From Macrostomum lignano (Eukaryota): a stretch of 64,000 nucleotides of DNA. Below are positions 31,942 to 59,654 of the stretch, piece by piece. The translations under genes were made by a program, and so were the position numbers. Where the stretch lies: NCBI GenBank assembly GCA_002269645.1, contig NIVC01001486.1, positions 266,747 to 330,746 on the forward strand, in the 5' to 3' direction. The notes beneath the pieces are model-generated. The model worked only from the letters and a program-made list of their open reading frames with translations, was not told the origin of the DNA and did no database searches. Position 1 is the first letter of the stretch. Each line of letters begins with the position of its first letter.

Positions 31942-32755
31942 CATGGGAGAAACGGCTGGGAGAGAACGTTCGTGAATAGAAAATATGTCAAGAATACACT
32001 TTAAGCGTATGTCTACTCAATCAACTGCTTTTTGAATAGATTTCATCAGTTAAGACACATCGCAACTTCGCAACACAGAATACGTGATTTCGTGAAGTCT
32101 ATTCGGCCATTCTTAAGAGACTTAAAAACTCCAACTGCAGTCAAAGAGGCGCTTGCAAACCTGAAAATGATCTGGCGGCAGCAAGCTAATGCTATTGAAC
32201 TCATTTTTCTGTCCTATATTTAGGTAGCAAGAAAGAAATCGGTAATTCCCTTCTAAGACCTGTGTGTTTAAACAGGGAAGCAGCAGTGTTGACCAGCCTG
32301 AGAAACTGTTTGCTCTACCATTAGTCCCGGCGTTTAGTCAACAAATAAAATATGAAACTTCGTCTTAACACATCATTGACGCAGTCCTGACTGCATGGAA
32401 ACTGAGATGTATGTGCCTTGTAAACTATCATTGAATCCCTGCTTTTTCGACCCTTTCTTCCAGACACGGTTTGCTACTGCTTTTGTGAGCCATGGTGCAT
32501 GTATTCTCGAATCGGAGCTAGAATTGCTGCCAATAATTGCTGAAAAACACATCTTTCATTGCCCTTTCTCAGTGAAATAAAGAATAAATGACATTATTTC
32601 TAGATGCCAAAAAAATTTTCTCTTGATAACTTCCCACACTTTTTATTGATTGACAAGCGGAATTGATCGGAACAGACTGCAAAGTTTAGAACCGCCACAA
32701 AACTTCAAAGTTTCAGACTGATCGTGCCAGAATGTTTCGTCAAGTGCTTTGTAAC

Positions 32756-35410: not shown

Positions 35411-35689
35411 AATTTAATGTTGATTTTGCCTTCCTATTCATCGTACTTGCCAAGCGAGCAACTTTACCTGAATTTCATATTCGTACGAGTAAGCTACTCG
35501 CACACATGCCAAGATCATCTGAGAAGCACTTCGAAACAAATTATGTCGAATGGAAACCTGATTTTGTCACTCATTCAAAATATATTTGTTCTTAGCTTCT
35601 CTTCCAACATCTAGTAGATTATGTGTATTAGTTGCATTCCTGAGTGGCGTACAGTTCTGGATGTAGTTTCAGACACGGACACTTTTGAG

Positions 35690-35901
35690 ACAGTCCAGTC
35701 GGGTCCGGTCAGGCTGGCTGGCAGGTAGACGAACGCCAGCAGGTGGCAGGCGAGCAGCCGCTCGGAGAAAACGGCGGCCTGGCAGTCGGCTGTGGCGCTG
35801 CACCGGAGCAGGCAGTCAGCGTCAGACTGGGCAGCGGCCGGCCAGGAGGAGTTCAAGCACTAGTTGGACGAGACTGTTTTGCTTCATCGTTGTGTAGACG
35901 T
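35690..35901 (-). pseudogene. Orphan PAN exon of the WSC-PAN family, with no adjacent WSC exon
   Basis: TTTCAG acceptor at 35902, then SSWPAAAQSDADCLLRCSATADCQAAVFSERLLACHLLAFVYLPASLTGPDWT. Frameshift near the 5' end; the normal YQRG* end is lost. Confidence 0.75.
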
Positions 35902-36714
35902 CTGAAAGTCAGCGTCTATGTCAGTAAGAATACCTGACTCATTGCTTCATTCAAACAGAATTCATTTGCTGTTTCTAAAAAAGTGCATTACTAAATCCAT
36001 ACAAGGCTGGTATACCTTAGTAAAATGTACTTAAAACCGTTAATAACATCGCTAAAGTTTTATTAGCGATGTCACCTAGGTGACTAGGTCGTAAATTCAA
36101 AAACTGGTGCCTTGTCCAGCCTTCTTGGAGGTGACAATAATTTTAAGGACATGCTTATATTTTCATAAATGGATCGTATCAGTCCAGGTAATTGGGTCTG
36201 GAAATCGTTCAAAACAAAAATAGAGCTATCAAACATGCGGCTGGATATTCCGAATTTTTGTCAATTTTGTTCTGTGCAGAGTCATTGGGTGGCTGCACTC
36301 TGGAGTAAGTGAGTCTATTAAAGTGTCTGGGTCCAACTGTATTGTTCACGGAGCAGTGAATCTACTGTTGCATGGTAATAATTATGCCAAAAGCTAGTAT
36401 GATTTTGTGAGTATCTTGCGGCGAGATTTTCTTAGAAATGGACTGGAGGCCGGTAACCGGAAAGGCACGTTTATTTGTCGTTTTGCTAAGTGCATTTTGT
36501 AAGCACTCGAGCAATCAGATTTCTATCGACCGAATTGGATAAAATATTTTTTTTCTTAAGATCGGCCATTGTTCGGTCTGGATCCCTGCATACCCGGCAC
36601 ACTTGCTGGAACTCACATCAGCAAGGTCCGCAAAGTGAGTGAGTTCTTCAATAAATGAGAAAGAATTATTTTATGTTTTGATTTGCATCTCGATTTTTAT
36701 TTATACTGCAATTA

Positions 36715-37313
36715 CACTCAGCAACAGTCAGAAGTTCCACCCTCCAAACGAGGTGAATTTTTCTCACTTATTGCGAGAGACGCAACTTACCGGCAAACGC
36801 GAAGCTTATTAAAACTTGGGGGTGGCTTGGGACTGCATAACGCATGGTACAAAACAAAAGCCGCCACACCGAGCCGATGCTGTTAGTCAACTGAAAGAAC
36901 AGCTGCAGCTGCGCACTCTGCGCTGGTCTTCCCGGTCCCCAGACATGAATCATGTCTGGGACTTCCTAAAACGCAGCTTTCGAAAAGAGAATCCACCACA
37001 GAATGTTGCCACTGAAAACGCTTGGCAGCAGCTTCCCCAGGACTTTCTGCGCCGCCTCATCCTGATCCTCATTCTCATCCGCAGTTCTGCGTGCGAAGGG
37101 ATCCCACACGCGGTACTAAGCATCGCGATTCTAACTGCATATTGCATGCAAAAAAAACTGTTCTGATTTTGTGCGACTAAACGTTTATTACTGATTCAAT
37201 AAACTTTACCTTCCTCGTGGCGGCTTAGTTGCGTAACTGGAGGGTGGAATTGTAAGTGAGAAGTTGTCGCAATAAGTGAGCAAATTTTCATCTCGCTTGG
37301 AGGGTGGAAATTT
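36715..37313 (+). mobile_element. Internally deleted Tc1/mariner DNA transposon
   Basis: WSSRSPDMNHVWDFLKR...AWQQLPQDFLRRLI matches the Tc1 C-terminal WPxxSPDLNPIEHVW motif. Inverted ends TTCCACCCTCCAA.CGAG.TGAA..TT.CTCACTTATTGCGA. Starts after TA. Confidence 0.8.
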
Positions 37314-37449
37314 TACAATCATGCTTCAAGATGCTTTTAGTTGCGTTAAAAGCGAGAGATTGTGTCGCCTCCACACAAAATGGGTTAAAATAGTCAACTA
37401 AACTGTTTAATAATATTCGCAAGACATCCCAGTCTGGTGCTGCGTTCTC

Positions 37450-38183
37450 TCAGCCACGCTGGTAGAGAGTCCAGTCGGGTCCGGTCAGGCTGGCCGGCGG
37501 GTAGGCGAACGCCAGCAGGTGGCACTCAAGCTGGAGCTGGGAGAAAACGGCGGCCTGGCAGTCGGCTGTGGCGCTGCACCACAGTAGACAGTCCGCGTCA
37601 GATTTGGCAGCAGCCGGCCAGGATGAGGTCTCGGACGAGATGACGGTGAGACTGTTCTGCTTCAGCACAGTGTAGAAGTTTTTGTCTGAAATCAGTTTTG
37701 TCAGTTTAGATGGCAGTTTTACTTTTCACCCATACCGATAAAACGGGTATTATTTCCACTGTGGCAAACAGAATCAATTCACTCACTGGGGTAGCTCAGC
37801 TCGAAGACGGAATTGCGGTTAGCCGCTCCGCACTTCTGCCCCGAATTTCCTGTGCAGAGATTGCTGCACTGGCTTTCTCCGGCTGCACCATGGACTCCGA
37901 AGGAGTTTCCGCAGAAGCACTGCTCACCAACCTGGATACCGAAGTACCGGAAGCCGCCTAGAGAGCAGACGCTACCGCACAGCTCGTGCGTCATTGTGGT
38001 CTTGTTGTACACGTAACCGCCAAATGTGATGCTGAGTTCACCGATGTTGCTGACTCCGAGTAGTCCATTCAAGTCCCTTGAGCTTGAGCTGTCCACATAG
38101 CAGCCTCTGTAAAAGAAACTGATGGACTCAGAGCAGGTCATGAAGGCCAGAAGCCATATAAGCAGTTGCTCAAGTTGATTCAT
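37450..38183 (-). CDS. WSC-PAN secreted protein copy G, join(37450..37685,37787..38183), 210 aa, intact
   Basis: MNQLEQLLIWLLAFMTCSES signal, WSC cysteines, phase-1 GT-AG intron, PAN-like exon ending YQRG*. Confidence 0.88.
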
Positions 38184-38799
38184 TTTCCTAGAAGGAAAAG
38201 CGTGTTAAAGCGCATTTTGGGTTCTCACGCTCACGCTTTTATATTCCGAAGCAATGTCGTTAATTGGACATGGATGGCCAATAGAAGCTTTCTGCTGATA
38301 TTTGGTTCTATTGTTGACAATGCTTTGTTCCCATCTGGATCCGTGATCCATTGGAATGGGAAAGGCTCTGGGATTCGTTGCCATAGTGATGCAATTCCGC
38401 AATAAAGAAATCAATTACTGGGTGCCCGAGAGGCTTGGTAAACAGTGCTGAATTAGAGGGTCCATGGCAGCAATCAAGCATACTCCTATATTAACAGCAC
38501 AATTAATTAATGGCATGCGTGTGGTTTCAGAACAAAAGCCATATGAACAGAAAAAGCTAGAACCTGAACGCCATTAAAGGCAGTAAACAAGAATCGCATC
38601 AGACTACTGGCATCAGATTTTTATAGTCTACTGAATACAAAAGAATTTATTGTCCCTATTTCTGATTAAACTGTTCTCGAATAAATTTCAGCACCACTTT
38701 TTCCATTTTTCTACCGAGAAAAGTAGTCTAAACTGTATCTAAATTATATTTTTGTAGATATGCCTGCGTTACAAAGATGTCGTCAGAAAGTGACTTAAA

Positions 38800-38913
38800 A
38801 CTACGTATCGTGCAGATTGTTGTCGATTTTTAGGCAGATTTGACGCAAAATACGCAAATTATACTACTATTTGAAAATGAAGTAAGTAGTATATGAAAAC
38901 GCTATCCTAAGCG
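38800..38913 (+). repeat. Left terminal inverted repeat (114 bp)
   Basis: Matches the reverse complement of 56921-57034 with about 3 mismatches. Looser inverted similarity extends to about 39130. Confidence 0.92.
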
Positions 38914-40149
38914 GGATATACATGGCAATATGTAGTCGTATATGTACATTAATCCCATGTACTGCATTAATCCCTATCTATCTCAAATTGTATATGTACA
39001 TGTCTACTTCTATGTCTATCCCAATTCTACATGTACATTGTCAACTTGTACAGTGCATACTTCTATATGTACACTTGCGCATTAATCTACTTCTATGACA
39101 ATTTCTATATGTACAGTGTATACATTAATCCCCAATCTTACACGACAGCCCCTGCTCTGCGTATTTGAATCGCCAACCCCCCAAGATTATATGTACAATT
39201 CCAACTCGAAACACTAATTGTTACGTGTACAGCGCAGTATATGCAGAGGTGGGTCGGTGCGCGCGCGACAGCTGTACAATCCGTTGCATGCGCGGAATAT
39301 TTACAAAAACGATACATCCAAATATACTAAATCTCCATTCTATACTATTTTCTGTGTTACAACCTATATATATTGGAATCACTATGCATATCGACCTCTA
39401 AAAGTAAGAATCATGGATGCACGGCACGCGATTTCTCTCTCTGAGACATATTTCCTTACACTTGAAATTGTACAATAACCTATAATACATTGCCTTTATA
39501 TTGAGTATGGGCCTGTACAAATCAAGAGATTAAATCAAGCCTGTACAAATCATATAGAGTTTGGGCCTGTACATGTTGAATCACACTTCAACTCTGCCCA
39601 TATTCAAAATCAACCCCAAGACTGTTCAAAAACAGCCACCCTCCAATGGTCAACAGATTCGTCTTCACAGTGCAGGCCCATATAGCAAATCGAATAGAAC
39701 CACTCGTCCCTGTTCTCCGACCTCCCTATTACTAACTGTCAAGGAATTCCGCCCATTTTCAGTGTACAGACAGATCTATCCACAGCACAGACCCTATATT
39801 AAACATTATTCAGCAAAACCCTCTTCTCCGATTACGTCATCCATGCCGCCCCCAGTTAGCAAGAAACCAACTGTTAATGCACATATGAACACCGCAAATC
39901 CGTGTCCACCAACCTCTACCTGCATTGACATAATACCCTGCTTTTGTCAATGTACACAATCTATGAATCAGTGTCTCCACCGCAATGCAATTCTGATATA
40001 CTTGATTCTAACACATTTGCATAGTGTCTCTTACCCTTGCGTTATACTAGAAGTATGCAATTCTACCTCTCCGCCACGCCTCTCCTGCCCTTATTTACTT
40101 CAAGCTTTCAGACTTGGTCCTGAGATGGTTTAATCTGTTCGAAGCAGGA

Positions 40150-41130
40150 ATGAATCATGCACTGACCTCTCCATATACAAAGTCAAGTTGGAATTTCAAA
40201 GAAGAAATTTGGTTATTTTGAAAGTTAAATGACTAGAAATGCGCATTTTTCATAAGAAAAATACAATTTTTCACAGTTTTTAACGATTTTAACGTTAAAA
40301 TGTAGACTTTATTGACCAAAAGCAGTAGTTTCATCACTAGAAACGATACTTTCAACAGCTAATTTGTCCAAATGTCGTTTTCAACTTGACCTTAGACAGA
40401 TTTGAAGCAAGAATGAATCCCACACAAACATCCACAAGCCAGCCCAGAATCAACCAAAGACATGGCTAGAAATGAGCATTTTTTTATAAGAAAATACAAA
40501 TTTTTCACAGTTTTTACGCATTTTTTACGTTAAAATGCAGACTTTATTGATCAAAATCAGTAATTCATCACTAAAAACCACAATTTTAGCACAAAATTAT
40601 CACAAATGCTACTTCTGGCCACTCTGGGACAGCTTTGAGCAGGAATTATAATCGCACACGGATTACCCGAGCCAGTCCAATTTCCACTAAAGCCATGGTT
40701 TTTTTAAAGCTAATTCATAGAATTTCTCATTCTTTCGTTTAATAAAGGCCAATTTTCACAGTTTTATTATTTTCTAACGTTAAAATGCGAAATGCGAAAT
40801 TATCAAACTTAGTAGTTTCATCCCAAAGGCCATAATTTCAACCGCTAATTTGTCCAAATGCTGATTTCAAAGTTGGCAAGAGACAGCTTTCGAGCAGGAA
40901 TGAGTCACACACTGATCTCCATATGCACACCCCTGCCCAAGTTGGAATTCCACCCAAGACATTTTCATTGAAAGCTAAATTACTAGAAATTGCACATTTT
41001 CGTTTCAAAAAAGGTCAATTTTCACAGTTTTTACTCTTTTTAACGTTAAAATGCGGACTTTATTGAACAAAATTAATCACTTCATCAGCAGAAACCATAA
41101 TTTTTACAACTTAATCATCACAAATGCTGC
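40150..41130. repeat. Four degenerate ~250-bp tandem units inside the element
   Basis: Anchor TTTTCACAGTTTT...ACGTTAAAATG recurs at about 40291, 40527, 40776 and 41042. Confidence 0.75.
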
Positions 41131-41698
41131 TTCATCATTCAAATAGGCATGTATATTGCCCAAGAAGAAGCTGGGGAAGTATTCTATAGACACAGTAAAA
41201 TTGGCGCTAAAAACACAGTCTGCTATTATACAGAATGATTTCAGTATCGATTGCTAAATCATGCCATTGATGCTATTTTAAACGTTATTCTCAGTTCTGA
41301 AGCTCCCAACAGCCTCTTTTAGATGCACTGAATCTGTGTTGTTGCACACACTACATTTTGAATCACCCTTCAATTCAACGATTCCCCACAATACATTCTA
41401 GCCATATTCCAAATTCAACCCAGGAGAATAATAATGTCGCAAATATGGAGAGAACAACACCTACCCCAGCCTCACCAAGGCAATTCTTTACTACCGCGTA
41501 AATGCCATAACTGACTCTCTGCTCAGATCCAATAAAATGCCGCATGGAAAAGGAATTGGCGGGGTATTTTTGACCCCCAACTTTCTATATCAAATGCGGA
41601 ACCGAGAGTACAATCGTACACTAATCTAGAAAATATAGACCCGGGAAGAAAATCACGCACACTTCTCGTGCCCCTACCCCATCCTCCCTCTCGCGGGG

Positions 41699-41706
41699 TA
41701 TATAAA
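41699..41706 (+). promoter_or_regulatory. TATA box (TATATAAA) upstream of the putative pPolB first exon
   Basis: Canonical TATA in a GC-rich context. The first downstream ATG is at 41925 (GAAATGG). Confidence 0.5.
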
Positions 41707-41924
41707 GCGGGTGAGAGCTGCTGCAGCCGCATCAGCAAAAGCAGCCAGCAGCAGCAGAAGCCACAACAGCAGAATCAACTGCTTCAACAGCATCAGCCTG
41801 CAACAGCGGCGACACAGCAGCAGCATCAGCACAGCAGCAGCAGCAACAAAAGCAACAACAGCAGCGCCAACTGCCTCAACAACATCACCAGCAGCATCAA
41901 CAACCATCTACCTTCCCCATCGAA

Positions 41925-42084
41925 ATGGCATCGAAGCGCTCTGCCGCGGAAGCGGCTATTTCAGCCTTGTGGGGGCATGCCGGCCCATCCAGGCAGCAGC
42001 AGCAACCACAGCAGCAGCAGCAGCAACCACAGCAGCAGCAGCATCAGCATCAGCCTCCGGCCGCAAAGAGGGGGCGACAGCTAG
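41925..42084 (+). CDS. Putative exon 1 of the pPolB gene (Gln-rich, basic NLS-like motifs), preceded by a CAG/CAA-rich leader
   Basis: MASKRSAAE...QQQQPQQQQQQPQQQQHQHQPPAAKRGRQL ends at CTAG|GTGAGT (phase 1), which is frame-compatible with the exon starting at 52147. Confidence 0.5.
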
Positions 42085-42649
42085 GTGAGTCTTGTTGCAA
42101 GTCTCTGTGTGTAAAACTATGCTTTTAATCTTTAGCATTTGCGAAATCTAAATTCAGAAAAATAGGGCTGTATAACTGCTTTTCAGCTTTAGCATTTGTG
42201 TGATTTGCAAACTTCACGCTTGTTGAAATATGGGCTTTCTTTGAAACCACAGCTTTCCATCTTTAACATTCGTTTTGGCTTAAAATTTCTGAAGTCAGGC
42301 CGTCCTCCTGCCATAGATATCACATTGAAGTAAAAGGGAAGAAACTGCTTTTGCTTTAGATTTATTTGGATTTCTCAATTCAGGCCTATTGAAATAACAG
42401 AGTTTCGGAGAATATCCGCAACAGCAGTATAGTTGGATAATACCTGTAGAGGATAGTCATAAAATTCCAGGGGCAGTATATGACTCATCCTTGAACTAGA
42501 GAGAGAAGAAGCAAAAAACAGCAATCCTGCGGCGCGAACGTGACTCAGCGGGCATGCAGGCTTTCTGGCAGTGATAAAATCAACCCCCGATTTTTTGGGC
42601 TCGGGGTGATGTATGATGTAATCACCGCTGCAAGCCTTAAGAGCCTTAA

Positions 42650-45600
42650 GAGCCTTAAGTTCACATGAAATCCACATTTATCCCCTTTCTCCCCACAGAG
42701 ATCCCCAAACGCTAAAGTGGTCGGGTTTTCGGCATAACGGGAGCCATTTGGCTCCAAATGAAGGGATTGGCGTAGAGAAATCGGGACCCAATGCTTCAGG
42801 CTCCATTCTAGAGCCTTAAGTTCACATGAAATCCACATTTATCCCCTTTCTCCCCACAGAGATCCCCAAACGCTAAAGTGGTCGGGTTTTCGGCATAACG
42901 GGAGCCATTTGGCTCCAAATGAAGGGATTGGCGTAGAGAAATCGGGACCCAATGCTTCAGGCTCCATTCTAGAGCCTTAAGTTCACATGAAATCCACATT
43001 TATCCCCTTTCTCCCCACAGAGATCCCCAAACGCTAAAGTGGTCGGGTTTTCGGCATAACGGGAGCCATTTGGCTCCAAATGAAGGGATTGGCGTAGAGA
43101 AATCGGGACCCAATGCTTCAGGCTCCATTCTAGAGCCTTAAGTTCACATGAAATCCCATTTATCCCCTTTCTCCCACAGAGATCCCCAAACGCTAAAGTG
43201 GTCGGGTTTTCGGCATAACGGGAGCCATTTGGCTCCAAATGAAGGGATTGGCGTAGAGAAATCGGGACCCAATGCTTCAGGCTCCATTCTAGAGCCTTAA
43301 GTTCACATGAAATCCACATTTATCCCCTTTCTCCCCACAGAGATCCCCAAACGCTAAAGTGGTCGGGTTTTCGGCATAACGGGAGCCATTTGGCTCCAAA
43401 TGAAGGGATTGGCGTAGAGAAATCGGGACCCAATGCTTCAGGCTCCATTCTAGAGCCTTAAGTTCACATGAAATCCACATTTATCCCCTTTCTCCCCACA
43501 GAGATCCCCAAACGCTAAAGTGGTCGGGTTTTCGGCATAACGGGAGCCATTTGGCTCCAAATGAAGGGATTGGCGTAGAGAAATCGGGACCCAATGCTTC
43601 AGGCTCCATTCTAGAGCCTTAAGTTCACATGAAATCCACATTTATCCCCTTTCTCCCCACAGAGATCCCCAAACGCTAAAGTGGTCGGGTTTTCGGCATA
43701 ACGGGAGCCATTTGGCTCCAAATGAAGGGATTGGCGTAGAGAAATCGGGACCCAATGCTTCAGGCTCCATTCTAGAGCCTTAAGTTCACATGAAATCCAC
43801 ATTTATCCCCTTTCTCCCCACAGAGATCCCCAAACGCTAAAGTGGTCGGGTTTTCGGCATAACGGGAGCCATTTGGCTCCAAATGAAGGGATTGGCGTAG
43901 AGAAATCGGGACCCAATGCTTCAGGCTCCATTCTAGAGCCTTAAGTTCACATGAAATCCACATTTATCCCCTTTCTCCCCACAGAGATCCCCAAACGCTA
44001 AAGTGGTCGGGTTTTCGGCATAACGGGAGCCATTTGGCTCCAAATGAAGGGATTGGCGTAGAGAAATCGGGACCCAATGCTTCAGGCTCCATTCTAGAGC
44101 CTTAAGTTCACATGAAATCCACATTTATCCCCTTTCTCCCCACAGAGATCCCCAAACGCTAAAGTGGTCGGGTTTTCGGCATAACGGGAGCCATTTGGCT
44201 CCAAATGAAGGGATTGGCGTAGAGAAATCGGGACCCAATGCTTCAGGCTCCATTCTAGAGCCTTAAGTTCACATGAAATCCACATTTATCCCCTTTCTCC
44301 CCACAGAGATCCCCAAACGCTAAAGTGGTCGGGTTTTCGGCATAACGGGAGCCATTTGGCTCCAAATGAAGGGATTGGCGTAGAGAAATCGGGACCCAAT
44401 GCTTCAGGCTCCATTCTAGAGCCTTAAGTTCACATGAAATCCCATTTATCCCCTTTCTCCCCACAGAGATCCCCAAACGCTAAAGTGGTCGGGTTTTCGG
44501 CATAACGGGAGCCATTTGGCTCCAAATGAAGGGATTGGCGTAGAGAAATCGGGACCCAATGCTTCAGGCTCCATTCTAGAGCCTTAAGTTCACATGAAAT
44601 CCACATTTATCCCCTTTCTCCCCACAGAGATCCCCAAACGCTAAAGTGGTCGGGTTTTCGGCATAACGGGAGCCATTTGGCTCCAAATGAAGGGATTGGC
44701 GTAGAGAAATCGGGACCCAATGCTTCAGGCTCCATTCTAGAGCCTTAAGTTCACATGAAATCCACATTTATCCCCTTTCTCCCCACAGAGATCCCCAAAC
44801 GCTAAAGTGGTCGGGTTTTCGGCATAACGGGAGCCATTTGGCTCCAAATGAAGGGATTGGCGTAGAGAAATCGGGACCCAATGCTTCAGGCTCCATTCTA
44901 GAGCCTTAAGTTCACATGAAATCCACATTTATCCCCTTTCTCCCCACAGAGATCCCCAAACGCTAAAGTGGTCGGGTTTTCGGCATAACGGGAGCCATTT
45001 GGCTCCAAATGAAGGGATTGGCGTAGAGAAATCGGGACCCAATGCTTCAGGCTCCATTCTAGAGCCTTAAGTTCACATGAAATCCACATTTATCCCCTTT
45101 CTCCCCACAGAGATCCCCAAACGCTAAAGTGGTCGGGTTTTCGGCATAACGGGAGCCATTTGGCTCCAAATGAAGGGATTGGCGTAGAGAAATCGGGACC
45201 CAATGCTTCAGGCTCCATTCTAGAGCCTTAAGTTCACATGAAATCCCATTTATCCCCTTTCTCCCCACAGAGATCCCCAAACGCTAAAGTGGTCGGGTTT
45301 TCGGCATAACGGGAGCCATTTGGCTCCAAATGAAGGGATTGGCGTAGAGAAATCGGGACCCAATGCTTCAGGCTCCATTCTAGAGCCTTAAGTTCACATG
45401 AAATCCACATTTATCCCCTTTCTCCCCACAGAGATCCCCAAACGCTAAAGTGGTCGGGTTTTCGGCATAACGGGAGCCATTTGGCTCCAAATGAAGGGAT
45501 TGGCGTAGAGAAATCGGGACCCAATGCTTCAGGCTCCATTCTAGAGCCTTAAGTTCACATGAAATCCACATTTATCCCCTTTCTCCCCACAGAGATCCCC

Positions 45601-48600
45601 AAACGCTAAAGTGGTCGGGTTTTCGGCATAACGGGAGCCATTTGGCTCCAAATGAAGGGATTGGCGTAGAGAAATCGGGACCCAATGCTTCAGGCTCCAT
45701 TCTAGAGCCTTAAGTTCACATGAAATCCCATTTATCCCCTTTCTCCCACAGAGATCCCCAAACGCTAAAGTGGTCGGGTTTTCGGCATAACGGGAGCCAT
45801 TTGGCTCCAAATGAAGGGATTGGCGTAGAGAAATCGGGACCCAATGCTTCAGGCTCCATTCTAGAGCCTTAAGTTCACATGAAATCCACATTTATCCCCT
45901 TTCTCCCCACAGAGATCCCCAAACGCTAAAGTGGTCGGGTTTTCGGCATAACGGGAGCCATTTGGCTCCAAATGAAGGGATTGGCGTAGAGAAATCGGGA
46001 CCCAATGCTTCAGGCTCCATTCTAGAGCCTTAAGTTCACATGAAATCCCATTTATCCCCTTTCTCCCCACAGAGATCCCCAAACGCTAAAGTGGTCGGGT
46101 TTTCGGCATAACGGGAGCCATTTGGCTCCAAATGAAGGGATTGGCGTAGAGAAATCGGGACCCAATGCTTCAGGCTCCATTCTAGAGCCTTAAGTTCACA
46201 TGAAATCCACATTTATCCCCTTTCTCCCCACAGAGATCCCCAAACGCTAAAGTGGTCGGGTTTTCGGCATAACGGGAGCCATTTGGCTCCAAATGAAGGG
46301 ATTGGCGTAGAGAAATCGGGACCCAATGCTTCAGGCTCCATTCTAGAGCCTTAAGTTCACATGAAATCCCATTTATCCCCTTTCTCCCCACAGAGATCCC
46401 CAAACGCTAAAGTGGTCGGGTTTTCGGCATAACGGGAGCCATTTGGCTCCAAATGAAGGGATTGGCGTAGAGAAATCGGGACCCAATGCTTCAGGCTCCA
46501 TTCTAGAGCCTTAAGTTCACATGAAATCCCATTTATCCCCTTTCTCCCACAGAGATCCCCAAACGCTAAAGTGGTCGGGTTTTCGGCATAACGGGAGCCA
46601 TTTGGCTCCAAATGAAGGGATTGGCGTAGAGAAATCGGGACCCAATGCTTCAGGCTCCATTCTAGAGCCTTAAGTTCACATGAAATCCACATTTATCCCC
46701 TTTCTCCCCACAGAGATCCCCAAACGCTAAAGTGGTCGGGTTTTCGGCATAACGGGAGCCATTTGGCTCCAAATGAAGGGATTGGCGTAGAGAAATCGGG
46801 ACCCAATGCTTCAGGCTCCATTCTAGAGCCTTAAGTTCACATGAAATCCACATTTATCCCCTTTCTCCCACAGAGATCCCCAAACGCTAAAGTGGTCGGG
46901 TTTTCGGCATAACGGGAGCCATTTGGCTCCAAATGAAGGGATTGGCGTAGAGAAATCGGGACCCAATGCTTCAGGCTCCATTCTAGAGCCTTAAGTTCAC
47001 ATGAAATCCACATTTATCCCCTTTCTCCCCACAGAGATCCCCAAACGCTAAAGTGGTCGGGTTTTCGGCATAACGGGAGCCATTTGGCTCCAAATGAAGG
47101 GATTGGCGTAGAGAAATCGGGACCCAATGCTTCAGGCTCCATTCTAGAGCCTTAAGTTCACATGAAATCCCATTTATCCCCTTTCTCCCCACAGAGATCC
47201 CCAAACGCTAAAGTGGTCGGGTTTTCGGCATAACGGGAGCCATTTGGCTCCAAATGAAGGGATTGGCGTAGAGAAATCGGGACCCAATGCTTCAGGCTCC
47301 ATTCTAGAGCCTTAAGTTCACATGAAATCCCATTTATCCCCTTTCTCCCACAGAGATCCCCAAACGCTAAAGTGGTCGGGTTTTCGGCATAACGGGAGCC
47401 ATTTGGCTCCAAATGAAGGGATTGGCGTAGAGAAATCGGGACCCAATGCTTCAGGCTCCATTCTAGAGCCTTAAGTTCACATGAAATCCACATTTATCCC
47501 CTTTCTCCCACAGAGATCCCCAAACGCTAAAGTGGTCGGGTTTTCGGCATAACGGGAGCCATTTGGCTCCAAATGAAGGGATTGGCGTAGAGAAATCGGG
47601 ACCCAATGCTTCAGGCTCCATTCTAGAGCCTTAAGTTCACATGAAATCCACATTTATCCCCTTTCTCCCCACAGAGATCCCCAAACGCTAAAGTGGTCGG
47701 GTTTTCGGCATAACGGGAGCCATTTGGCTCCAAATGAAGGGATTGGCGTAGAGAAATCGGGACCCAATGCTTCAGGCTCCATTCTAGAGCCTTAAGTTCA
47801 CATGAAATCCCATTTATCCCCTTTCTCCCACAGAGATCCCCAAACGCTAAAGTGGTCGGGTTTTCGGCATAACGGGAGCCATTTGGCTCCAAATGAAGGG
47901 ATTGGCGTAGAGAAATCGGGACCCAATGCTTCAGGCTCCATTCTAGAGCCTTAAGTTCACATGAAATCCACATTTATCCCCTTTCTCCCCACAGAGATCC
48001 CCAAACGCTAAAGTGGTCGGGTTTTCGGCATAACGGGAGCCATTTGGCTCCAAATGAAGGGATTGGCGTAGAGAAATCGGGACCCAATGCTTCAGGCTCC
48101 ATTCTAGAGCCTTAAGTTCACATGAAATCCCATTTATCCCCTTTCTCCCACAGAGATCCCCAAACGCTAAAGTGGTCGGGTTTTCGGCATAACGGGAGCC
48201 ATTTGGCTCCAAATGAAGGGATTGGCGTAGAGAAATCGGGACCCAATGCTTCAGGCTCCATTCTAGAGCCTTAAGTTCACATGAAATCCACATTTATCCC
48301 CTTTCTCCCCACAGAGATCCCCAAACGCTAAAGTGGTCGGGTTTTCGGCATAACGGGAGCCATTTGGCTCCAAATGAAGGGATTGGCGTAGAGAAATCGG
48401 GACCCAATGCTTCAGGCTCCATTCTAGAGCCTTAAGTTCACATGAAATCCCATTTATCCCCTTTCTCCCCACAGAGATCCCCAAACGCTAAAGTGGTCGG
48501 GTTTTCGGCATAACGGGAGCCATTTGGCTCCAAATGAAGGGATTGGCGTAGAGAAATCGGGACCCAATGCTTCAGGCTCCATTCTAGAGCCTTAAGTTCA

Positions 48601-51600
48601 CATGAAATCCACATTTATCCCCTTTCTCCCCACAGAGATCCCCAAACGCTAAAGTGGTCGGGTTTTCGGCATAACGGGAGCCATTTGGCTCCAAATGAAG
48701 GGATTGGCGTAGAGAAATCGGGACCCAATGCTTCAGGCTCCATTCTAGAGCCTTAAGTTCACATGAAATCCCATTTATCCCCTTTCTCCCACAGAGATCC
48801 CCAAACGCTAAAGTGGTCGGGTTTTCGGCATAACGGGAGCCATTTGGCTCCAAATGAAGGGATTGGCGTAGAGAAATCGGGACCCAATGCTTCAGGCTCC
48901 ATTCTAGAGCCTTAAGTTCACATGAAATCCACATTTATCCCCTTTCTCCCCACAGAGATCCCCAAACGCTAAAGTGGTCGGGTTTTCGGCATAACGGGAG
49001 CCATTTGGCTCCAAATGAAGGGATTGGCGTAGAGAAATCGGGACCCAATGCTTCAGGCTCCATTCTAGAGCCTTAAGTTCACATGAAATCCACATTTATC
49101 CCCTTTCTCCCCACAGAGATCCCCAAACGCTAAAGTGGTCGGGTTTTCGGCATAACGGGAGCCATTTGGCTCCAAATGAAGGGATTGGCGTAGAGAAATC
49201 GGGACCCAATGCTTCAGGCTCCATTCTAGAGCCTTAAGTTCACATGAAATCCACATTTATCCCCTTTCTCCCCACAGAGATCCCCAAACGCTAAAGTGGT
49301 CGGGTTTTCGGCATAACGGGAGCCATTTGGCTCCAAATGAAGGGATTGGCGTAGAGAAATCGGGACCCAATGCTTCAGGCTCCATTCTAGAGCCTTAAGT
49401 TCACATGAAATCCCATTTATCCCCTTTCTCCCCACAGAGATCCCCAAACGCTAAAGTGGTCGGGTTTTCGGCATAACGGGAGCCATTTGGCTCCAAATGA
49501 AGGGATTGGCGTAGAGAAATCGGGACCCAATGCTTCAGGCTCCATTCTAGAGCCTTAAGTTCACATGAAATCCACATTTATCCCCTTTCTCCCCACAGAG
49601 ATCCCCAAACGCTAAAGTGGTCGGGTTTTCGGCATAACGGGAGCCATTTGGCTCCAAATGAAGGGATTGGCGTAGAGAAATCGGGACCCAATGCTTCAGG
49701 CTCCATTCTAGAGCCTTAAGTTCACATGAAATCCACATTTATCCCCTTTCTCCCCACAGAGATCCCCAAACGCTAAAGTGGTCGGGTTTTCGGCATAACG
49801 GGAGCCATTTGGCTCCAAATGAAGGGATTGGCGTAGAGAAATCGGGACCCAATGCTTCAGGCTCCATTCTAGAGCCTTAAGTTCACATGAAATCCACATT
49901 TATCCCCTTTCTCCCCACAGAGATCCCCAAACGCTAAAGTGGTCGGGTTTTCGGCATAACGGGAGCCATTTGGCTCCAAATGAAGGGATTGGCGTAGAGA
50001 AATCGGGACCCAATGCTTCAGGCTCCATTCTAGAGCCTTAAGTTCACATGAAATCCACATTTATCCCCTTTCTCCCCACAGAGATCCCCAAACGCTAAAG
50101 TGGTCGGGTTTTCGGCATAACGGGAGCCATTTGGCTCCAAATGAAGGGATTGGCGTAGAGAAATCGGGACCCAATGCTTCAGGCTCCATTCTAGAGCCTT
50201 AAGTTCACATGAAATCCACATTTATCCCCTTTCTCCCCACAGAGATCCCCAAACGCTAAAGTGGTCGGGTTTTCGGCATAACGGGAGCCATTTGGCTCCA
50301 AATGAAGGGATTGGCGTAGAGAAATCGGGACCCAATGCTTCAGGCTCCATTCTAGAGCCTTAAGTTCACATGAAATCCACATTTATCCCCTTTCTCCCCA
50401 CAGAGATCCCCAAACGCTAAAGTGGTCGGGTTTTCGGCATAACGGGAGCCATTTGGCTCCAAATGAAGGGATTGGCGTAGAGAAATCGGGACCCAATGCT
50501 TCAGGCTCCATTCTAGAGCCTTAAGTTCACATGAAATCCACATTTATCCCCTTTCTCCCCACAGAGATCCCCAAACGCTAAAGTGGTCGGGTTTTCGGCA
50601 TAACGGGAGCCATTTGGCTCCAAATGAAGGGATTGGCGTAGAGAAATCGGGACCCAATGCTTCAGGCTCCATTCTAGAGCCTTAAGTTCACATGAAATCC
50701 ACATTTATCCCCTTTCTCCCCACAGAGATCCCCAAACGCTAAAGTGGTCGGGTTTTCGGCATAACGGGAGCCATTTGGCTCCAAATGAAGGGATTGGCGT
50801 AGAGAAATCGGGACCCAATGCTTCAGGCTCCATTCTAGAGCCTTAAGTTCACATGAAATCCACATTTATCCCCTTTCTCCCCACAGAGATCCCCAAACGC
50901 TAAAGTGGTCGGGTTTTCGGCATAACGGGAGCCATTTGGCTCCAAATGAAGGGATTGGCGTAGAGAAATCGGGACCCAATGCTTCAGGCTCCATTCTAGA
51001 GCCTTAAGTTCACATGAAATCCCATTTATCCCCTTTCTCCCACAGAGATCCCCAAACGCTAAAGTGGTCGGGTTTTCGGCATAACGGGAGCCATTTGGCT
51101 CCAAATGAAGGGATTGGCGTAGAGAAATCGGGACCCAATGCTTCAGGCTCCATTCTAGAGCCTTAAGTTCACATGAAATCCACATTTATCCCCTTTCTCC
51201 CCACAGAGATCCCCAAACGCTAAAGTGGTCGGGTTTTCGGCATAACGGGAGCCATTTGGCTCCAAATGAAGGGATTGGCGTAGAGAAATCGGGACCCAAT
51301 GCTTCAGGCTCCATTCTAGAGCCTTAAGTTCACATGAAATCCCATTTATCCCTTTCTCCCCACAGAGATCCCCAAACGCTAAAGTGGTCGGGTTTTCGGC
51401 ATAACGGGAGCCATTTGGCTCCAAATGAAGGGATTGGCGTAGAGAAATCGGGACCCAATGCTTCAGGCTCCATTCTAGAGCCTTAAGTTCACATGAAATC
51501 CACATTTATCCCCTTTCTCCCCACAGAGATCCCCAAACGCTAAAGTGGTCGGGTTTTCGGCATAACGGGAGCCATTTGGCTCCAAATGAAGGGATTGGCG

Positions 51601-52137
51601 TAGAGAAATCGGGACCCAATGCTTCAGGCTCCATTCTGGAGCCTTAAGTTCACATGAAATCCACATTTATCCCCTTTCTCCCCACAGAGATCCCCAAACG
51701 CTAAAGTGGTCGGGTTTTCGGCATAACGGGAGCCATTTGGCTCCAAATGAAGGGATTGGCGTAGAGAAATCGGGACCCAATGCTTCAGGCTCCATTCTAG
51801 AGCCTTAAGTTCACATGAAATCCCCATTTATCCCCTTTCTCCCCACAGAGATCCCCAAACGCTAAAGTGGTCGGGTTTTCGGCATAACGGGAGCCATTTG
51901 GCTCCAAATGAAGGGATTGGCGTAAAGAAATCGGGACCCAATGCTTCAGGCTCCATTCTAGAGCCTTAAGTTCACATGAAATCCCATTTATCCCCTTTCT
52001 CCCCACAGAGATCCCCAAACGCTAAAGTGGTCGGGTTTTCGGCATAACGGGAGCCATTTGGCTCCAAATGAAGGGATTGGCGTAAAGAAATCGGGACCCA
52101 ATGCTTCAGGCTCCATTCTGACTCTTAAGTTCATATG
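42650..52137. repeat. 161-bp satellite, about 59 near-identical tandem copies (~9.5 kb), inside the element
   Basis: ORF-track hits repeat every 161 bp. Variants are mainly ATCCACATTT/ATCCCATTT and CTCCCCAC/CTCCCAC. A triple AGCCTTAAG marks the left edge. Confidence 0.98.
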
Positions 52138-52146
52138 CCCTTTAAG

Positions 52147-55100
52147 GCAAAAGGGGTCGAATACGAGATAGTACGAGCGTATTCACAAATTTGAGCGATA
52201 TTCGCTCAACATTTGAGAATATAATTTCTGTGCTTTGCAGCGACCTGAATGCAGATGACTTCGTCGCATCTAAGCTGACAGCGGACAATATGATGCTCGC
52301 CATCAATGTCCCGCCGGTCTGCGCCGCCCGCTTCACTGCAGAGTTGATATTTAAACATATCAACAAGGTTCTGCAGTCGGACTCCAGTGTCTTGGGCAAC
52401 AACTTTAAATTGTTTTTACTCAAGGCCTGGGTCCCGCGGGGCGGCTGCGGCAGCCTAGATGCGGCGGAGCGCCACATCCAGGCACGCCATTCAATGGGCT
52501 ATAATTACGTTGTCATTGCCAACCGCGACAAGCGGTGCCTTATCCGGGCGCTGATTGTCGCCAAGGCATACGCCGATCTGCAGGCCAAGGCCATCACTAA
52601 GCGGGCTTGGCGGACTATCAAAGCCGACTCCTCACTGCAGACGAAGCTGACTGGGGAGCTTCAGATTGCTGCCAATCCGTATTCGGTGAGTAAAAATGTT
52701 CTTGCACATTTTAATTTGCATTTTTATTAATATACAAATGTTTTAGTCTTTATCAACCATTGCACAGGCCGGGCCTTTCTGGGTTGACGTGCTCCCTCAA
52801 CTGCTCGCCGCCATGAACGCTCAGTCACCCGGCCGGGATTTCGGCGTTCGTGTGTACAGTGCTGAGGGAGGCAACACGTGTGTGTATGCCCTGCCCGGCA
52901 ACACGGTGCTGAATCTGCACCTAATTGGCGAACACTTTAACGCGGTGTGCAAGGTACCGCCATTTTTCGGTGCTCGCCGCTATTGTGAAAGCTGCCAGCA
53001 GCCGTACGACTGCGTGTCTGGAGAACACAAGTGCGCCAACACCTGCCCTCAGTGTAAAGTGCCCGGCTCCAATTGCAAGAGCCTGCGGTGTGACTATAAG
53101 CGCTGCGCTGATTGTGGCCTCAAGTGCTACAATCAGCAGTGCTTTAACAATCACCGCCAAAAAAACCGAGCCGGCAGGTCTCGCTGCAGCTCCATACGCG
53201 TCTGCTCCAAATGCGGATATTTGGAGGAGATGAAAGCGGGCCAGAAGGAGCCGGAGCACAAGTGCGGGCATGTCAAGTGCCCACTGTGTAAACAGTACGA
53301 CGAGGCCGGCTCACATTTGTGTTTCGTCAAGGCTCCCAAAGTGAAAGCTTCGACTATGCCGTACGTGTTCTACGATACGGAAACGTACACGGACGAGGAG
53401 AAGCAGCATCACGTGCATCTGGTGACTGCCGTCACGTGCTGCGAGACCTGCTCCGGCCGGGCGTTTCCGCGCGAGACTTGCCGCCTCTGCAATGGCCTGC
53501 ATAGCGCCGCCAATTGTCTGACTGGCCGCGATCTGGGGGAGGAATTCTCCAATTGCGTCAGCCACTCAGACTGCGCCTGCCAAATGGCCGATTTTGTGGC
53601 TGTGGGCCCGGCCTCGCTGAATGCGTTTTTCGCCTGGCTGAGCACAGCTTTCCGTGGCGGCGCCATTGTTGTCGCGCACAATGCATCAGGCTATGATGCG
53701 TTTCTACTGCTTGGCGCTCTGCTCAACGGCCTGGCCAAGAAGCGGCCCCAAGTACTGTTCCAGGGTAGCCGGCTAATGAGCATGACGGTGGATAAATTGG
53801 TATTTAAAGATTCGTTAAACTTTATACCAATCCCGCTTGCGCAATTCCCCAAAGCGCTGGGGCTCGCTGACACAAAGCTGGCCAAGGGGACGTTTCCCAC
53901 GAGTTCAACAAGCCGGCTAATTGGAACTACGTGGGCCCCTACCCGGCTATTGAATATTATGGCGGCAAAGCAAACAATGACTACGACTCCATCTGTGCTT
54001 GGCTGGCCTCGCGACAGGGCGAGTTGTTCAACTTTAATCGGGAGTATCTCGATTATTGTTTGAGTGACACAGTCCTGCTTCGCGAGGGCTGCATCAAGTA
54101 CAGGGCAATAATTGGCGACATTTGCGACGGCCTGGAACCGTTTGTTCAGGCCAATACGATTGCCAGTTTGGCAATGGCCGTATTTACTACTAAATTCATG
54201 GAGCCCAACTCGGTCGGCGTGATTGCCCGGCAGGCCGACCAGCAGTCATTCAAGGCGCGCAAGTAACTGGCCTATTTGAATGCCACCGAATTTGGCGGGC
54301 GGCTGCGCACCTGCGACTCGACTGGCGGCGAGGCGGTCATTCTCGGCCGCAAGGTGGACGGCTTTGATGAGGCTAGCAACACTGTTTTGCAGTTTCTTGG
54401 TTGTTTCTACCATGGCTGCGAGCAGTGCATGCCCGATCAGGATGTCGTCCACCCGCTCTGAGCCACATTCGCCACGAAACCGAGTGGTTCACTCGCGAGT
54501 TGGAGCGGCATAATTACAGTGTTCGTACAATTTGGGAACATGAATACGACGCTGTATTGGCATCGCAGGCCGATTTTATCGCCGCAACTGCCCATCTGCG
54601 CGCTCCACTCAAGATGGAGGATGCGCTCTATGGCGGCCGCGTAGAGTGTTTTATCCCGCATGCTGTGGCCAGCGAGACTGAGACGCTCAAATATCGGGAT
54701 GTGGTGAGTAGTGATACTACTAATATAGTAGAATATTTTGTAAAAATACAGTTTATGAAAAATAATGCTTTATTTCAACTTGCAGGTCTCTCTGTACCCG
54801 ACGGTGCAGTCGAAAGACCCATACCCGATTGGCCACCCGGTGCAACATCCGACGCCGCAGACGCTCAACTCTGACGCGCTGGCCAGCTACTTTAATTGGC
54901 ATTGCCAAAGTGACTGTGCTACCGCCGTCGGATTTGCATATTCCGCTGCTGCCGTACAGGGTGCAAAAGAAGCTCTTTTTTGGGCTTTGCCGCACCTGTA
55001 TGGAGCAGCAGTGCGGTGGCGAGTGCTGCGACCACTCAGACGAGGAACGGGCGCTGACTGGCACCTGGGCAACGCCGGAGCTGCAAAAGGCCTTCCAGTT

Positions 55101-56175
55101 GGGCTACCGTCTGCAGGCTGTTCACGCGCTAGCCTACTGGACAGAGAAGCGGACCGGTCTATTCGGTGATTACGTGAATGCCTTCCTGAAGCTGAAGGCC
55201 GAATCGAGCGGCTCCCCCGGCATGTCGGATGAAGATAAGGCGGTCTATATTGCCGATTTCTTCGCCAAGGAGGGCGTCACGCTGGACAAGGTCGAACCCA
55301 ACCCAGGACTTCGCTTTGTAGCGAAAATCTTTTTGAATTCGTAAGTATTCATAAATTTTGTTTTTTAAATGATTTTCTTCTACTAACAGTAGCTTTTCTT
55401 TTCACTACACAGGCTCTGGGGCAAATTTTGTCAGCGTGACGACCTGACATCGACCGAGATTGTGTCCAGCTACGAGGACTGGCTCGCCCGGCTGACCGAC
55501 CCCAACCTCAAAGTCAAGGCCTGCGAACCGATTGGCAGCGAGTTTATGCTGCTAGAGTACCGGCACCGTTACTTTAATCAGCGGCCATTCAGGTACTCCA
55601 ATGTGCCAATCGGAGTCTTTACGACCACGCAGGCCCGGCTGCGCCTGTACGAGGCATTGGAGGGGCTCGGCGAACGGGCCATTTACTGCGACACTGACTC
55701 GTAAGTATTGCATTGGAAAAATTCTTTTAGAATTGAATAGTTAGCATGTGGAACTAATTATCTCGTTTTTCTCTCCCCCACACAGGGTCGTTTACCGGCA
55801 TTCCGAGGGCCAATGGGAGCCGCCCCATGGCACGAGCCTCGGAATGTGGACCGATGAGGTGCCCGCAGGCAGCCGGATGACCGACTTTGTAAGTGGGGGC
55901 CCAAGCTCTACACTTACATTGTCGAGGATGCGGCCGGTGTCCGCAGCCAAGTCCTGAAATGCAAGGGCATCCGCCTGACTCCGGAGATACGGGAGCGTAG
56001 CGATGACTTGCGCAACACCCTGCTACACGGCGGCTCTCTGCAGCTGCCGCAGTTTCAGTTCAGGCGCGACAAGGCGTCTTGTACCATACACACGATCAGT
56101 ATGGACAAGACGTTTCAGCGCGTGCTGACGAAACGCGTGTACGGGGCCTGCAGCAGGCCTTATGGCTATAAATAA
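52147..56175 (+). CDS. polB: Spliced protein-primed family-B DNA polymerase, exons 52147-52685, 52768-54703, 54786-55340, 55413-55700, 55786-56175; disrupted in this assembly by four 1-bp frameshifts and one stop
   Basis: ExoI YVFYDTET, ExoII AHNASGYD, FKDSLNF, ExoIII YCLSD, YGGRVE. After splicing: motif A DV|VSLYP, motif B KIFLNS|LWGKF, motif C YCDTDS|V. C-terminus KCKGI...KR...PYGYK*. Introns are GT-AG, 72-85 bp. Confidence 0.92.
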
Positions 56176-56920
56176 TGCTGACTGACAATTCAATGTACAT
56201 TTTGCATTATAAAATTAGTAAAATCTATTTGTTGTACATAATTTGCATATCAATGTACATAAAGCATTTTTGCATTGTAGCTCGTACTATTGCCAAATTT
56301 ATCAGCGTGAATCTATTTGTTGTACATAATTCATGTACATAAAGTATTTTTGTATTGTATGCGGTGAAATTGCCTATGTAATTACGAGTATCTATTGTAC
56401 ATATTTTGCGTGTCAGACCTGCTTAAAATCATTTATGAAGAGAAAAATATTGAAAAACAATGTAAAATTTTCCGTTTATTCTATTTGCTGGTAATGTACA
56501 TAAATTTTTTCCTGTAATATGCTACTGATTTATTGTAAATATATCTTCTTTGTAAATAGTTTATATACGATGTGAGCTGTACAATTAGTTGACTCATTTA
56601 GATGAGATTGTACACCAATTCTCACCTCTGCGAACAACTGTACATGTAGTAGGGTTTCGAGTTGTACATGTAATCTTGGTGATTCATACAGAGCGCGCCG
56701 GCCGTCTGGGGAAGACACTGTACATGTAGATTAATGTAGAAGTATGTACTGCGTACATATAGAATTGGGGATAGAACATGTACAATTTGGGATAGATAGG
56801 GATTAATGTACATGGGATTAATGTACATATCCATTTTGAGATAGATAGGGATTAATGCAGTACATGGATTAATGTACATATGCAAGTACATATAGAAATA
56901 TGCTATGTATACATATTTCA

Positions 56921-57034
56921 CGCTTAGAATAGCGTTTTCATATACTACTTACTTCATTTTCAAATAGTAGTATAATTTGCGTTTTTTGCGTCAAATCTGT
57001 CTAAAAATCGACAACAATCTGCACGATACGTAGT
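56921..57034 (-). repeat. Right terminal inverted repeat (114 bp)
   Basis: Reverse complement of 38800-38913, followed by the TSD CTTAAA. Confidence 0.92.
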
Positions 57035-57284
57035 CTTAAAACTACAAATTTTATTAATGATTTCCAGAACTGGCTTGTTACAGGCGGTCCAGGTGCTGAG
57101 TTAAGACGTTCAGTTAGACTTGCCATAAACAGTCAAAGATTAAATACAAATATTTTAAGTTCAGTTTTGCCGGTAAAAGTGTCACAACACGCTCAAAATC
57201 CCATTCAAGCAAGCATCAGTGTTTAATAAGTAAACACATTCGTGTCTTAAATCAGATAACAAGTGACAGTTGAAGGTTTTTAGA

Positions 57285-58070
57285 TGTTGTTGTGGGTTGA
57301 TGGCTTTGCCATAGACATTTTTGTTACGCGACTGCGTTGATGAATTGAACCATGCTATTGAGTTATGAAATAAATAATAGACGCGTCAGAGGTCAACAGA
57401 CCGCTAGACTGACAATTGCTTAAGACTAAAGCCAAAAGCACAACAGTGGCGTCGGCAAGCATAGGCTACGAAAATGCCTGGAAGTACGCCAGCATCGCCA
57501 ACTAAAGGAGTTGGTAAAACGGTTTCGAGCGACAAAGCACCACCGCTTGCGATCTCGTCGAAATCAGTCCAAGCGACAAAGTCGGCAACAGCGACAGCGC
57601 AGAACCCAAGCGCACAAGTATCGAGAGGACAGCAAGTTGACATCGAAAAACTCGATGAAAGTTCGAACTTCCAGAGGTGGTTGGACCGATTCACACTGTG
57701 CAGCGAACTCAACGGCTGGCAGGACGACACGAAAAATAAGCTGCTGCTGATTAAGCTCAGTACCAAGCTGTACGACGCATTGGCAGATCGAGCCGCTCCC
57801 AAGAAGCCGGGAGAAAAGAGCTTCGATGAACTGACCAAACTACTGGCCAGCATCCTGGAACCAAAGACGTTCGTCATGGCTGAGAGATTCAATTTCCAGC
57901 ATATCACTCGCACGGCATCAATGAGCATTCGTGAGTATGCACAGCAACTCTGCATGCAGGCAGACAAGTGTCAGTTTGGCCTATCCAGAGATGAGAGACT
58001 GAGAGAAAATTTAAACCTTTCAATCATTCGAAATCATGATCCTTGCCCCATCACCTTCATGCAACCTTGA
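57285..58070 (+). mobile_element. gag: Ty3/Gypsy relic: short 5' LTR (57285-57445), PBS and truncated gag (ORF 57474-58070)
   Basis: TGTTGT...ACAACA inverted termini with internal AATAAA, then GTGGCGTCGG (PBS-like). The ORF contains ERFNF..ITR...SIREYAQQL..QADKCQFG...DERLRE, typical of Gypsy Gag, and then breaks off. Confidence 0.75.
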
Positions 58071-58942: not shown

Positions 58943-59654
58943 CTAGGTTTTGATGAACACAGCCCATCCGGGTCCGGTCAGGCTGGCTGGCGGGAAGGCG
59001 AACGGCAGCAGGCGGCAGGCGAGCAGCTGCTTGGAGAAGACGGCGCCGCTGCAGTTGGCTCTGGCGCTGCACTGGAGCAGGCAGTCCGCGTCGGACTGGC
59101 AGCGGCCGGCCAGGACGAGTCGACGGTAGAGGTCACCGTGATGTCCGAATTCTTCAGCACAGTGTATGCATTGTTGCCTGAAAGTTGTGTAATTTTATTA
59201 AGATTTTCTCTCAGTTGAAATTCTAAGAGGCAGCGTCGAGCTAACTCACTCGGGAAGGTCATAGCAAACACGGAGTTGATTGAGAAGCCGCCACAAATCT
59301 GCTCTGGGTTTCCCGTGCACTGCCTGTTGCACATGCTATCACTGAGCTGTCCGTGGAGTCCGTAGGAGCTGCCGCAGAAGCACTGCTTGCCGACCTGCAC
59401 GCCGAAGTAGGGAAAGCGGCCCAGAGAGCAGACGTTGCTGCAGAACTCGTGCGACATGTTGTTGAGGCTGTGCACTAGGTCGCCAACACCAATACTGTAC
59501 GGCCCCAGATTTTTTAACCCTTTCAGACCTGTCATATCTCTGTTCGAGTTATCACCGTCTCGATAACAACCAACGTAGGAGAAATGAGCCACCCTGCGGC
59601 TGCACAGGTCAGGAGGCCGCACAGCAACGCCGACTCTAACAGTGAGATTCTCAT
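58943..59654 (-). CDS. WSC-PAN copy H, join(58943..59177,59250..59654); two 1-bp deletions (~59596, ~59098)
   Basis: MRISLLESALLCGLLTCAA signal, WSC cysteines, conserved phase-1 intron, PAN-like exon ending GWAVFIKT*. Each exon is one base short of frame. Confidence 0.78.

Follow-up and report, generated by a model that had tools for sequence, protein, structure and literature searches.

An 18.2-kb insertion in Macrostomum lignano with a broken, intron-bearing DNA polymerase gene, probably an old and defective Polinton/Maverick-type element

The subject of this work is an 18.2-kb insertion in the genome of the flatworm Macrostomum lignano, bounded by terminal inverted repeats (TIRs) and by a target-site duplication (TSD), whose only gene remnant codes for a family B DNA polymerase of the protein-primed type (pPolB). 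The window, that is, the whole 64-kb stretch of DNA analysed, contained this insertion once, and all coordinates are positions in the window. From left to right, the following features were found (strand given where one applies):

38794-38799: left TSD, CTTAAA, the same hexamer as on the right, immediately outside the TIR.
38800-38913, plus strand: left TIR core, matching the reverse complement of 56921-57034 at 111 of 114 positions, with a gapped continuation to about 39001.
38914-42648: left arm, non-coding, 3.7 kb, with three copies of GGGATTAATG, degenerate repeats and a CAG-rich tract.
42649-52137: satellite array, 59 copies of a 161-bp unit, 99% identical (Tandem Repeats Finder), adjoining the polymerase.
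52138-56175, plus strand: pPolB gene, broken, with four canonical introns, five frameshifts and one in-frame stop, its 5' end removed by the satellite.
56176-56920: right subterminal region, non-coding, AT-rich (GC 0.36), with GGGATTAATG motifs and short TGTACATAA-type tandem repeats.
56921-57034, minus strand: right TIR core, pairing with the left TIR core.
57035-57040: right TSD, CTTAAA.

The two TIR cores were 114 bp long and identical as reverse complements at 111 positions. When gaps were allowed, the inverted repeat extended over some 200-215 nt (about 38800-39001 against 56821-57034) with 89% identity. A 51-nt terminal probe matched the two TIR ends and nothing else in the 64 kb, with no match expected from shuffled sequence; a paralogous empty site, looked for with the two flanks joined, was likewise absent from the window, as was any second fragment of the element or of its satellite. 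The element started with ACTACG and ended with CGTAGT, and CTTAAA stood at the exact offset of the TIR end on both sides, an agreement with a chance of about 1 in 4096. Since the TIR ends were set independently, by the point at which complementarity stops, this match of hexamers was not expected by chance. Thus, the 114-bp repeats, unique in the window, the 6-bp duplication directly outside them and the terminal bases, all three proposed in an earlier note on this DNA, were recovered as described there. A TTAA duplication, as left by TIR transposons of the piggyBac type, was considered and rejected, since under that reading the ends would not be complementary at their first bases.

The exact decamer GGGATTAATG had three copies in the left subterminal region (38947-39132, minus strand) and another three in the right (56799-56874, plus strand), in mirror orientation, and was confined to these two regions in the 64 kb. 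The mirror-image motifs, together with the common TSD, indicated that both arms belong to one element. By their placement, the motifs are candidate binding sites for a protein that handles the element ends. The TIR divergence (3/114, 2.6%), along with indels in the subterminal regions, fits an old insertion.

The pPolB gene reported earlier inside the element was found at 52138-56175 on the plus strand. The largest open reading frame (ORF) matched M. lignano models named "DNA-directed DNA polymerase", at up to 91-93% identity, which places the window in M. lignano or a very near relative of it, and the homologues carried PF03175, the family of organellar and viral protein-primed PolB. Exo I, Exo II and Exo III, as well as the polymerase motifs A, B, C and KxY, could be read in the translations. 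Sequence searches against the PDB gave a marginal match only, between the motif C region of the family and the phi29 polymerase. Towards the N-terminus, a Cys motif (N.D..C..RA) and a His motif (H[YF]..[VI]) aligned with canonical Polinton polymerases, at three comparator loci (L034, L035, and L009), and with the polymerase P0006. Such an arrangement, with an OTU-like domain fused to pfam03175, has been described for adintoviruses and Polintons whose PolB is of the "Alpha" class (PMC8502044). An AlphaFold2 model built on a five-sequence alignment of the polymerase reached a pLDDT of 35, too low for the model to speak for or against an OTU fold. Judged by these motifs, the polymerase probably belongs to the lineage with a predicted N-terminal OTU-like domain followed by a PF03175 protein-primed PolB.

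The coding path of the polymerase was read against its homologues, with lesions and introns tallied by anchor-based counting, and it shifted frame several times with respect to them. Four introns accounted for part of these shifts. They were 61, 82, 72, and 85 nt long, started with GT[AG]AGT, ended with YAG (canonical GT..AG) and were 66-79% AT, as compared to 56% GC in the exons. Three of them interrupted the polymerase motifs A, B, and C and the remaining one the OTU-like domain. The residues flanking each intron were contiguous in the intronless relative L009, so that excision restored exact colinearity; the polymerase had been called "spliced", and this description held. From these four canonical introns it would follow that, up to the death of this copy, the lineage had been transcribed in the nucleus with splicing by the host, a sign of long residence in the host genome.

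Apart from the introns, the gene carried five frameshifts without any intron-like interval and one in-frame stop. Its 5' end was cut as well: homology to the N-termini of the M. lignano models P0007, P0008, and P0010 began at the satellite edge, and the 20-30 conserved residues that precede this point in the three models were nowhere in the window. P0007, a model of another copy, read uninterrupted across five of the six point lesions; these five are therefore private to the window copy or to its assembly. Because its polymerase is frameshifted, stopped and truncated at the 5' end, this copy cannot be self-synthesising, contrary to what had been claimed. It is now inert, a genomic fossil. The earlier note was right that a spliced polymerase is the sole recognisable gene of the element; it missed that this gene is broken and did not state that 9.5 kb of the 18.2 kb is satellite.

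Other genes of a Polinton were looked for by tblastn with every ORF of L034, L035, and L009 against the whole window, the queries including two integrases of the rve type with a chromodomain and two packaging ATPases. Matches came from the polymerases alone (E 1e-23 to 1e-54), and all other ORFs remained at E > 0.2; for the rve plus chromodomain integrases of L034 and L035 in particular nothing was found in the window (E > 7). The virion module (packaging ATPase, maturation protease, and major and minor capsid proteins) gave no match either with the comparator ORFs or in PHROGs, the capsid part of this result being weak as the comparator capsid proteins were themselves not recognised.

The left arm had a GC content of 0.30-0.45 outside the CAG tract. 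Besides the CAG-rich tract (41723-42054), it contained tandem repeats, at 40138-41133, that were degenerate and about 250 bp in size, and stops were dense in all six frames. No match was obtained when six-frame translations of the arm, with stops written as X, were searched against PHROGs. Scans of the window for tRNA and Rfam families were empty. The satellite occupied 9.5 kb of the 18.2 kb (52% of the element) and its 161-bp unit was absent from the remainder of the window. The left edge of the array arises from a local 9-bp triplication (AGCCTTAAG x 3), and at the right edge the last unit was diverged. The array was 99% uniform as opposed to a TIR divergence of 2.6%, which suggests that the satellite is younger than the insertion. 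Each satellite unit also held GGGATAAATG, one mismatch away from the subterminal motif and in the orientation of the left arm; this resemblance could be due to chance.

Outside Macrostomum, the best polymerase matches had 29-36% identity. For P0019 (35%) and P0017 (29%), the nearest of these relatives with a readable neighbourhood, the setting was a canonical Polinton array, in which the pPolB formed a long ORF free of introns and was accompanied by an A32-like ATPase and by an rve integrase bearing a chromodomain. In most other metagenomic relatives the polymerase lay in a single frame. A scan of metagenomes returned relatives at 37% identity or less, and a scan of viral contigs returned none. 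The comparator loci are metagenome contigs; no TIRs were found in L034, L035, or L009, which are partial contigs. In the part of L009 that was read (1-11910) there were an intact OTU-like pPolB of 1233 aa, a Walker-A ATPase and two more large ORFs without assignment, and no integrase; this contig looks like a Polinton-like virus. In L001, a eukaryotic contig of 337 kb, the polymerase P0006 (10001-18300) was split into several genes with about 2.8 kb of other ORFs between them, and this locus is another decayed copy.

Within M. lignano, at least 14 named UniRef polymerase models were found. They formed two subfamilies, one about 85-93% identical to the window copy and the other about 62%; three models outside this count, P0012-P0014, also grouped with the second one. 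Redundancy is high in the assemblies of this species, which contain 180 Mb of duplicated blocks (PMC5730564); the number of models therefore overstates the number of copies, and the DNA read directly is that of one copy. Seven models of the second subfamily (P0001, P0002, P0004, P0010, P0156, P0158, and P0159) all skipped one and the same stretch of about 130 residues after motif A, which reflects either a lesion common to the copies or a repeated artefact of the gene predictor.

Several models joined the polymerase to host sequence. P0158 (A0A1I8GML4) had a CHID1-like N-terminus fused to the polymerase, and in P0011 (A0A1I8JAK4) the flanks were those of an ADAM-like metalloprotease with disintegrin. 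These fusions in UniRef are annotation artefacts that stem from insertions, and chimeras with unrelated host genes are the pattern to be expected from scattered insertion. P0009 (A0A1I8I8M4) combined plus-strand ORFs of the WSC region (26965-37986), the CAG tract (41988-42107) and the polymerase, and the sequence behind it differed from the window by indels. It is a chimeric model of the window locus or of its duplicate, and it supports the left junction in part; the underlying reads may be the same.

The element is probably one insertion event in a repeat-rich stretch between WSC-domain genes. Exons with the WSC domain flanked it on both sides (37779-38183 and 58978-59622, both on the minus strand), and host exons to its left were up to 100% identical to an M. 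lignano model. The earlier note had placed the insertion upstream of a gene that it named WSC-PAN copy G; WSC exons do neighbour the element, whereas the orientation is doubtful and the word "upstream" may have to be reversed, because the strand of these exons is the minus strand. Past the right end, at a distance of some 430 bp, a 198-aa ORF (57474-58070, plus strand) resembled a fragment of a retrotransposon Gag when its translation was read by eye, and the element therefore lies in DNA rich in transposable elements. By eye, too, a 116-aa ORF (36816-37166, plus strand) looked like the C-terminal part of a Tc1/mariner transposase. More tandem arrays were present at 18645-22249, 9450-10879, 1-212, 1058-1321, and 6785-7164; they comprised a 23-bp unit repeated 158 times, some 1.4 kb of GA-rich sequence, a pair of arrays with an 18-bp unit and one array with a 41-bp unit. 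A high content of tandem repeats is known for M. lignano, and the arrays of the window agree with it.

These data are probably best explained by an old, defective insertion of the Polinton/Maverick type, made by a DDE integrase that is now lost or was supplied in trans. The 6-bp duplication argues that a DDE integrase acted: an enzyme of the retroviral type would have recognised the ends of the element and joined them to a 6-bp staggered cut. As this copy encodes no such enzyme, the integrase would have been lost with the interior or have come in trans from a complete relative. By protein priming at the TIRs, the polymerase would have replicated the linear element after its excision, following the model of integration and replication that Kapitonov and Jurka reportedly established for Polintons in 2006. 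That model, with DDE integration and protein-primed replication, is summarised in PMC10748475 and PMC5718144. After insertion the interior would have decayed, and the satellite would then have expanded from the 9-bp triplication as far as the polymerase, removing its start.

Several observations weigh against this explanation. At least two of the frameshifts consisted of a one-base difference in the length of a short homopolymer run, and differences in homopolymer length are the commonest class of error in long-read assemblies. The public M. lignano assemblies were built on early PacBio reads (PMC5730564), so that some frameshifts could be assembly errors and the true number of lesions could be lower; the in-frame stop and the 5' truncation are not errors of the homopolymer type. 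Intact vertebrate Mavericks have been reported as intronless, and four introns are atypical in this respect (PMC8097293). The termini differ from the AG/CT or AGT/ACT repeats of vertebrate Mavericks (PMC8097293), a motif that is known from vertebrates and may not be universal outside them. The earlier note had taken the non-AG termini as a sign of a distinct family; this part of its case is weak, since end motifs already vary among vertebrate Mavericks (PMC8097293). Only the DNA of one copy was read, and neither a second pair of TIRs nor an empty site was found in the window. In the element, as elsewhere in the window, tblastn and PHROGs revealed nothing left of genes for an integrase, ATPase, protease or capsid. 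Finally, the ATPase and the integrase of L034 had no M. lignano match in a collection of 5.8 billion proteins, a negative that is weak because the search needs common 5-residue words and covers annotated proteins only; the same searches returned homologues from bivalve molluscs, nematodes and many metagenomes, and the collection contains the at least 14 M. lignano polymerase models mentioned above. A complete progenitor in M. lignano is thus an assumption. The description of the element as "integrase-less" applied to this copy in view of tblastn and PHROGs, and for the family the protein searches support it weakly and indirectly; an integrase-less family in M. lignano is unproven.

These last results bear on the strongest alternative, which is possible and clearly the less probable one. 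It holds that the element belongs to a distinct TIR-bounded family of M. lignano whose normal content is an intron-bearing pPolB and nothing else, the window copy being a dead member; such a family would multiply without integrase or capsid genes of its own, through an integrase acting in trans or through duplication by the host. Its main argument is the number of polymerase models in M. lignano, at least 14, set beside the lack of any ATPase or integrase match from the species. That the polymerase is the sole gene remnant of the window copy is in line with it, the four introns of host type suggest long vertical residence, and the stretch after motif A that is skipped in all models of the second subfamily could mean that copies multiplied after the damage. 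Part of this argument loses weight on closer reading, as the protein-search negatives are weak (5-residue words, annotated models only) and redundant assemblies (180 Mb of duplicated blocks, PMC5730564) inflate the number of models. Moreover, the 6-bp TSD requires an integrase from somewhere, the nearest relatives with a readable neighbourhood lie in complete Polinton arrays, the repeats of the left arm could simply have replaced lost genes, and self-synthesis fails for the window copy. That the M. lignano lineage as a whole is a polymerase-only, non-autonomous branch of the Polintons, adapted to nuclear expression and host splicing, is accordingly a tentative proposal, rather doubtful at present.

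It is very unlikely that the element is not one unit, being made up of two truncated elements, or of an unrelated TIR transposon and a nested polymerase fragment, that were joined by the satellite or by mis-assembly. An array of 9.5 kb with 99% uniformity is prone to collapse or mis-joining, building the public M. lignano assemblies was difficult (PMC5730564), and the left arm is tied to the polymerase by the array alone. In favour of a single unit stand the same 6-bp duplication on the two outer sides and the mirror image formed by the subterminal motifs. So do the edges of the array, which look natural (the triplication on the left and the diverged unit on the right), and P0009, which links the left host exons, the CAG tract and the polymerase, possibly from the same reads. 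Least probable of all, and very much so, is a host-domesticated (exapted) family of intron-bearing polymerase genes with TIRs left over and of no current relevance: the canonical introns, the contrast of GC-rich exons with AT-rich introns that host genes also show and the many paralogues would suit it, whereas the window copy is a pseudogene that carries six point lesions and lacks its 5' end, and the chimeric paralogue models (CHID1-like, ADAM-like and antisense WSC) fit scattered insertions and are unlike a conserved locus.

As a relic, the element adds a Polinton-type insertion delimited from end to end in a free-living flatworm, a group with only recent reports of such insertions. It also explains misleading "DNA-directed DNA polymerase" entries and chimeric models in the M. 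lignano proteome. Two features deserve attention. One is that four canonical introns lie in a Polinton-type polymerase, whose gene is as a rule described as lacking them; the other is that the host has many polymerase copies and apparently no matching integrase or ATPase genes. If both were true genome-wide, a virus-like element could shed everything but its polymerase and yet spread.

Among known systems that combine a pPolB with terminal repeats, casposons are prokaryotic self-synthesising transposons that integrate by means of Cas1. The element shares with them a pPolB, TIRs and a TSD, and differs in residing in an animal and in encoding nothing similar to Cas1. Mitochondrial and cytoplasmic linear plasmids (PMC10583447) also have a pPolB and TIRs and no integrase. 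These plasmids are extrachromosomal, cause no target duplication and usually carry an RNA polymerase gene, in contrast with the element, which is chromosomal, is flanked by a 6-bp TSD, has introns and no second gene, and has polymerase relatives linked to Polintons.

The closest resemblance is to Polintons and Mavericks, and the label "Polinton-like" given to the element earlier was supported by its exact TIR ends, 6-bp TSD, pPolB and size. Polintons are 13-25 kb long, with TIRs of 100-1500 bp and TSDs of 5-8 bp (PMC10748475), and the values obtained here (18.2 kb, 114 bp, and 6 bp, respectively) all fall inside these ranges; a TSD of 6 bp is typical for Mavericks (PMC8097293). The PF03175 protein-primed PolB with N-terminal OTU-like Cys and His motifs is a further likeness. 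The element differs from them in having no integrase, ATPase, protease or capsid genes, in the four introns of spliceosomal type in its polymerase and in the satellite that makes up half of its length. The definition of a Polinton includes an integrase encoded along with the polymerase (PMC5499653), and because none was found the element is filed as a defective derivative of the Polinton type and not as an autonomous member.

Defective copies are the rule in vertebrates, where 96% of Maverick loci are eroded fossils (PMC8097293). The element resembles these fossils in the erosion of its coding sequence by stops and frameshifts and in the 6-bp TSD, which they show where the ends survive. It differs in that its ends and TSD are exact even though one gene is left, and in that the four GT..AG interruptions are intron-like and not random insertions. 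Nine Polintons without major capsid protein, protease and ATPase have also been described (PMC4028283); in these, as in the element, the virion module is lost and a shift towards a pure transposon state is apparent, the element going one step further in lacking the integrase too. Rhabditophoran flatworms have been reported to carry insertions related to Orthopolintovirales (bioRxiv 10.1101/2025.04.19.649669).

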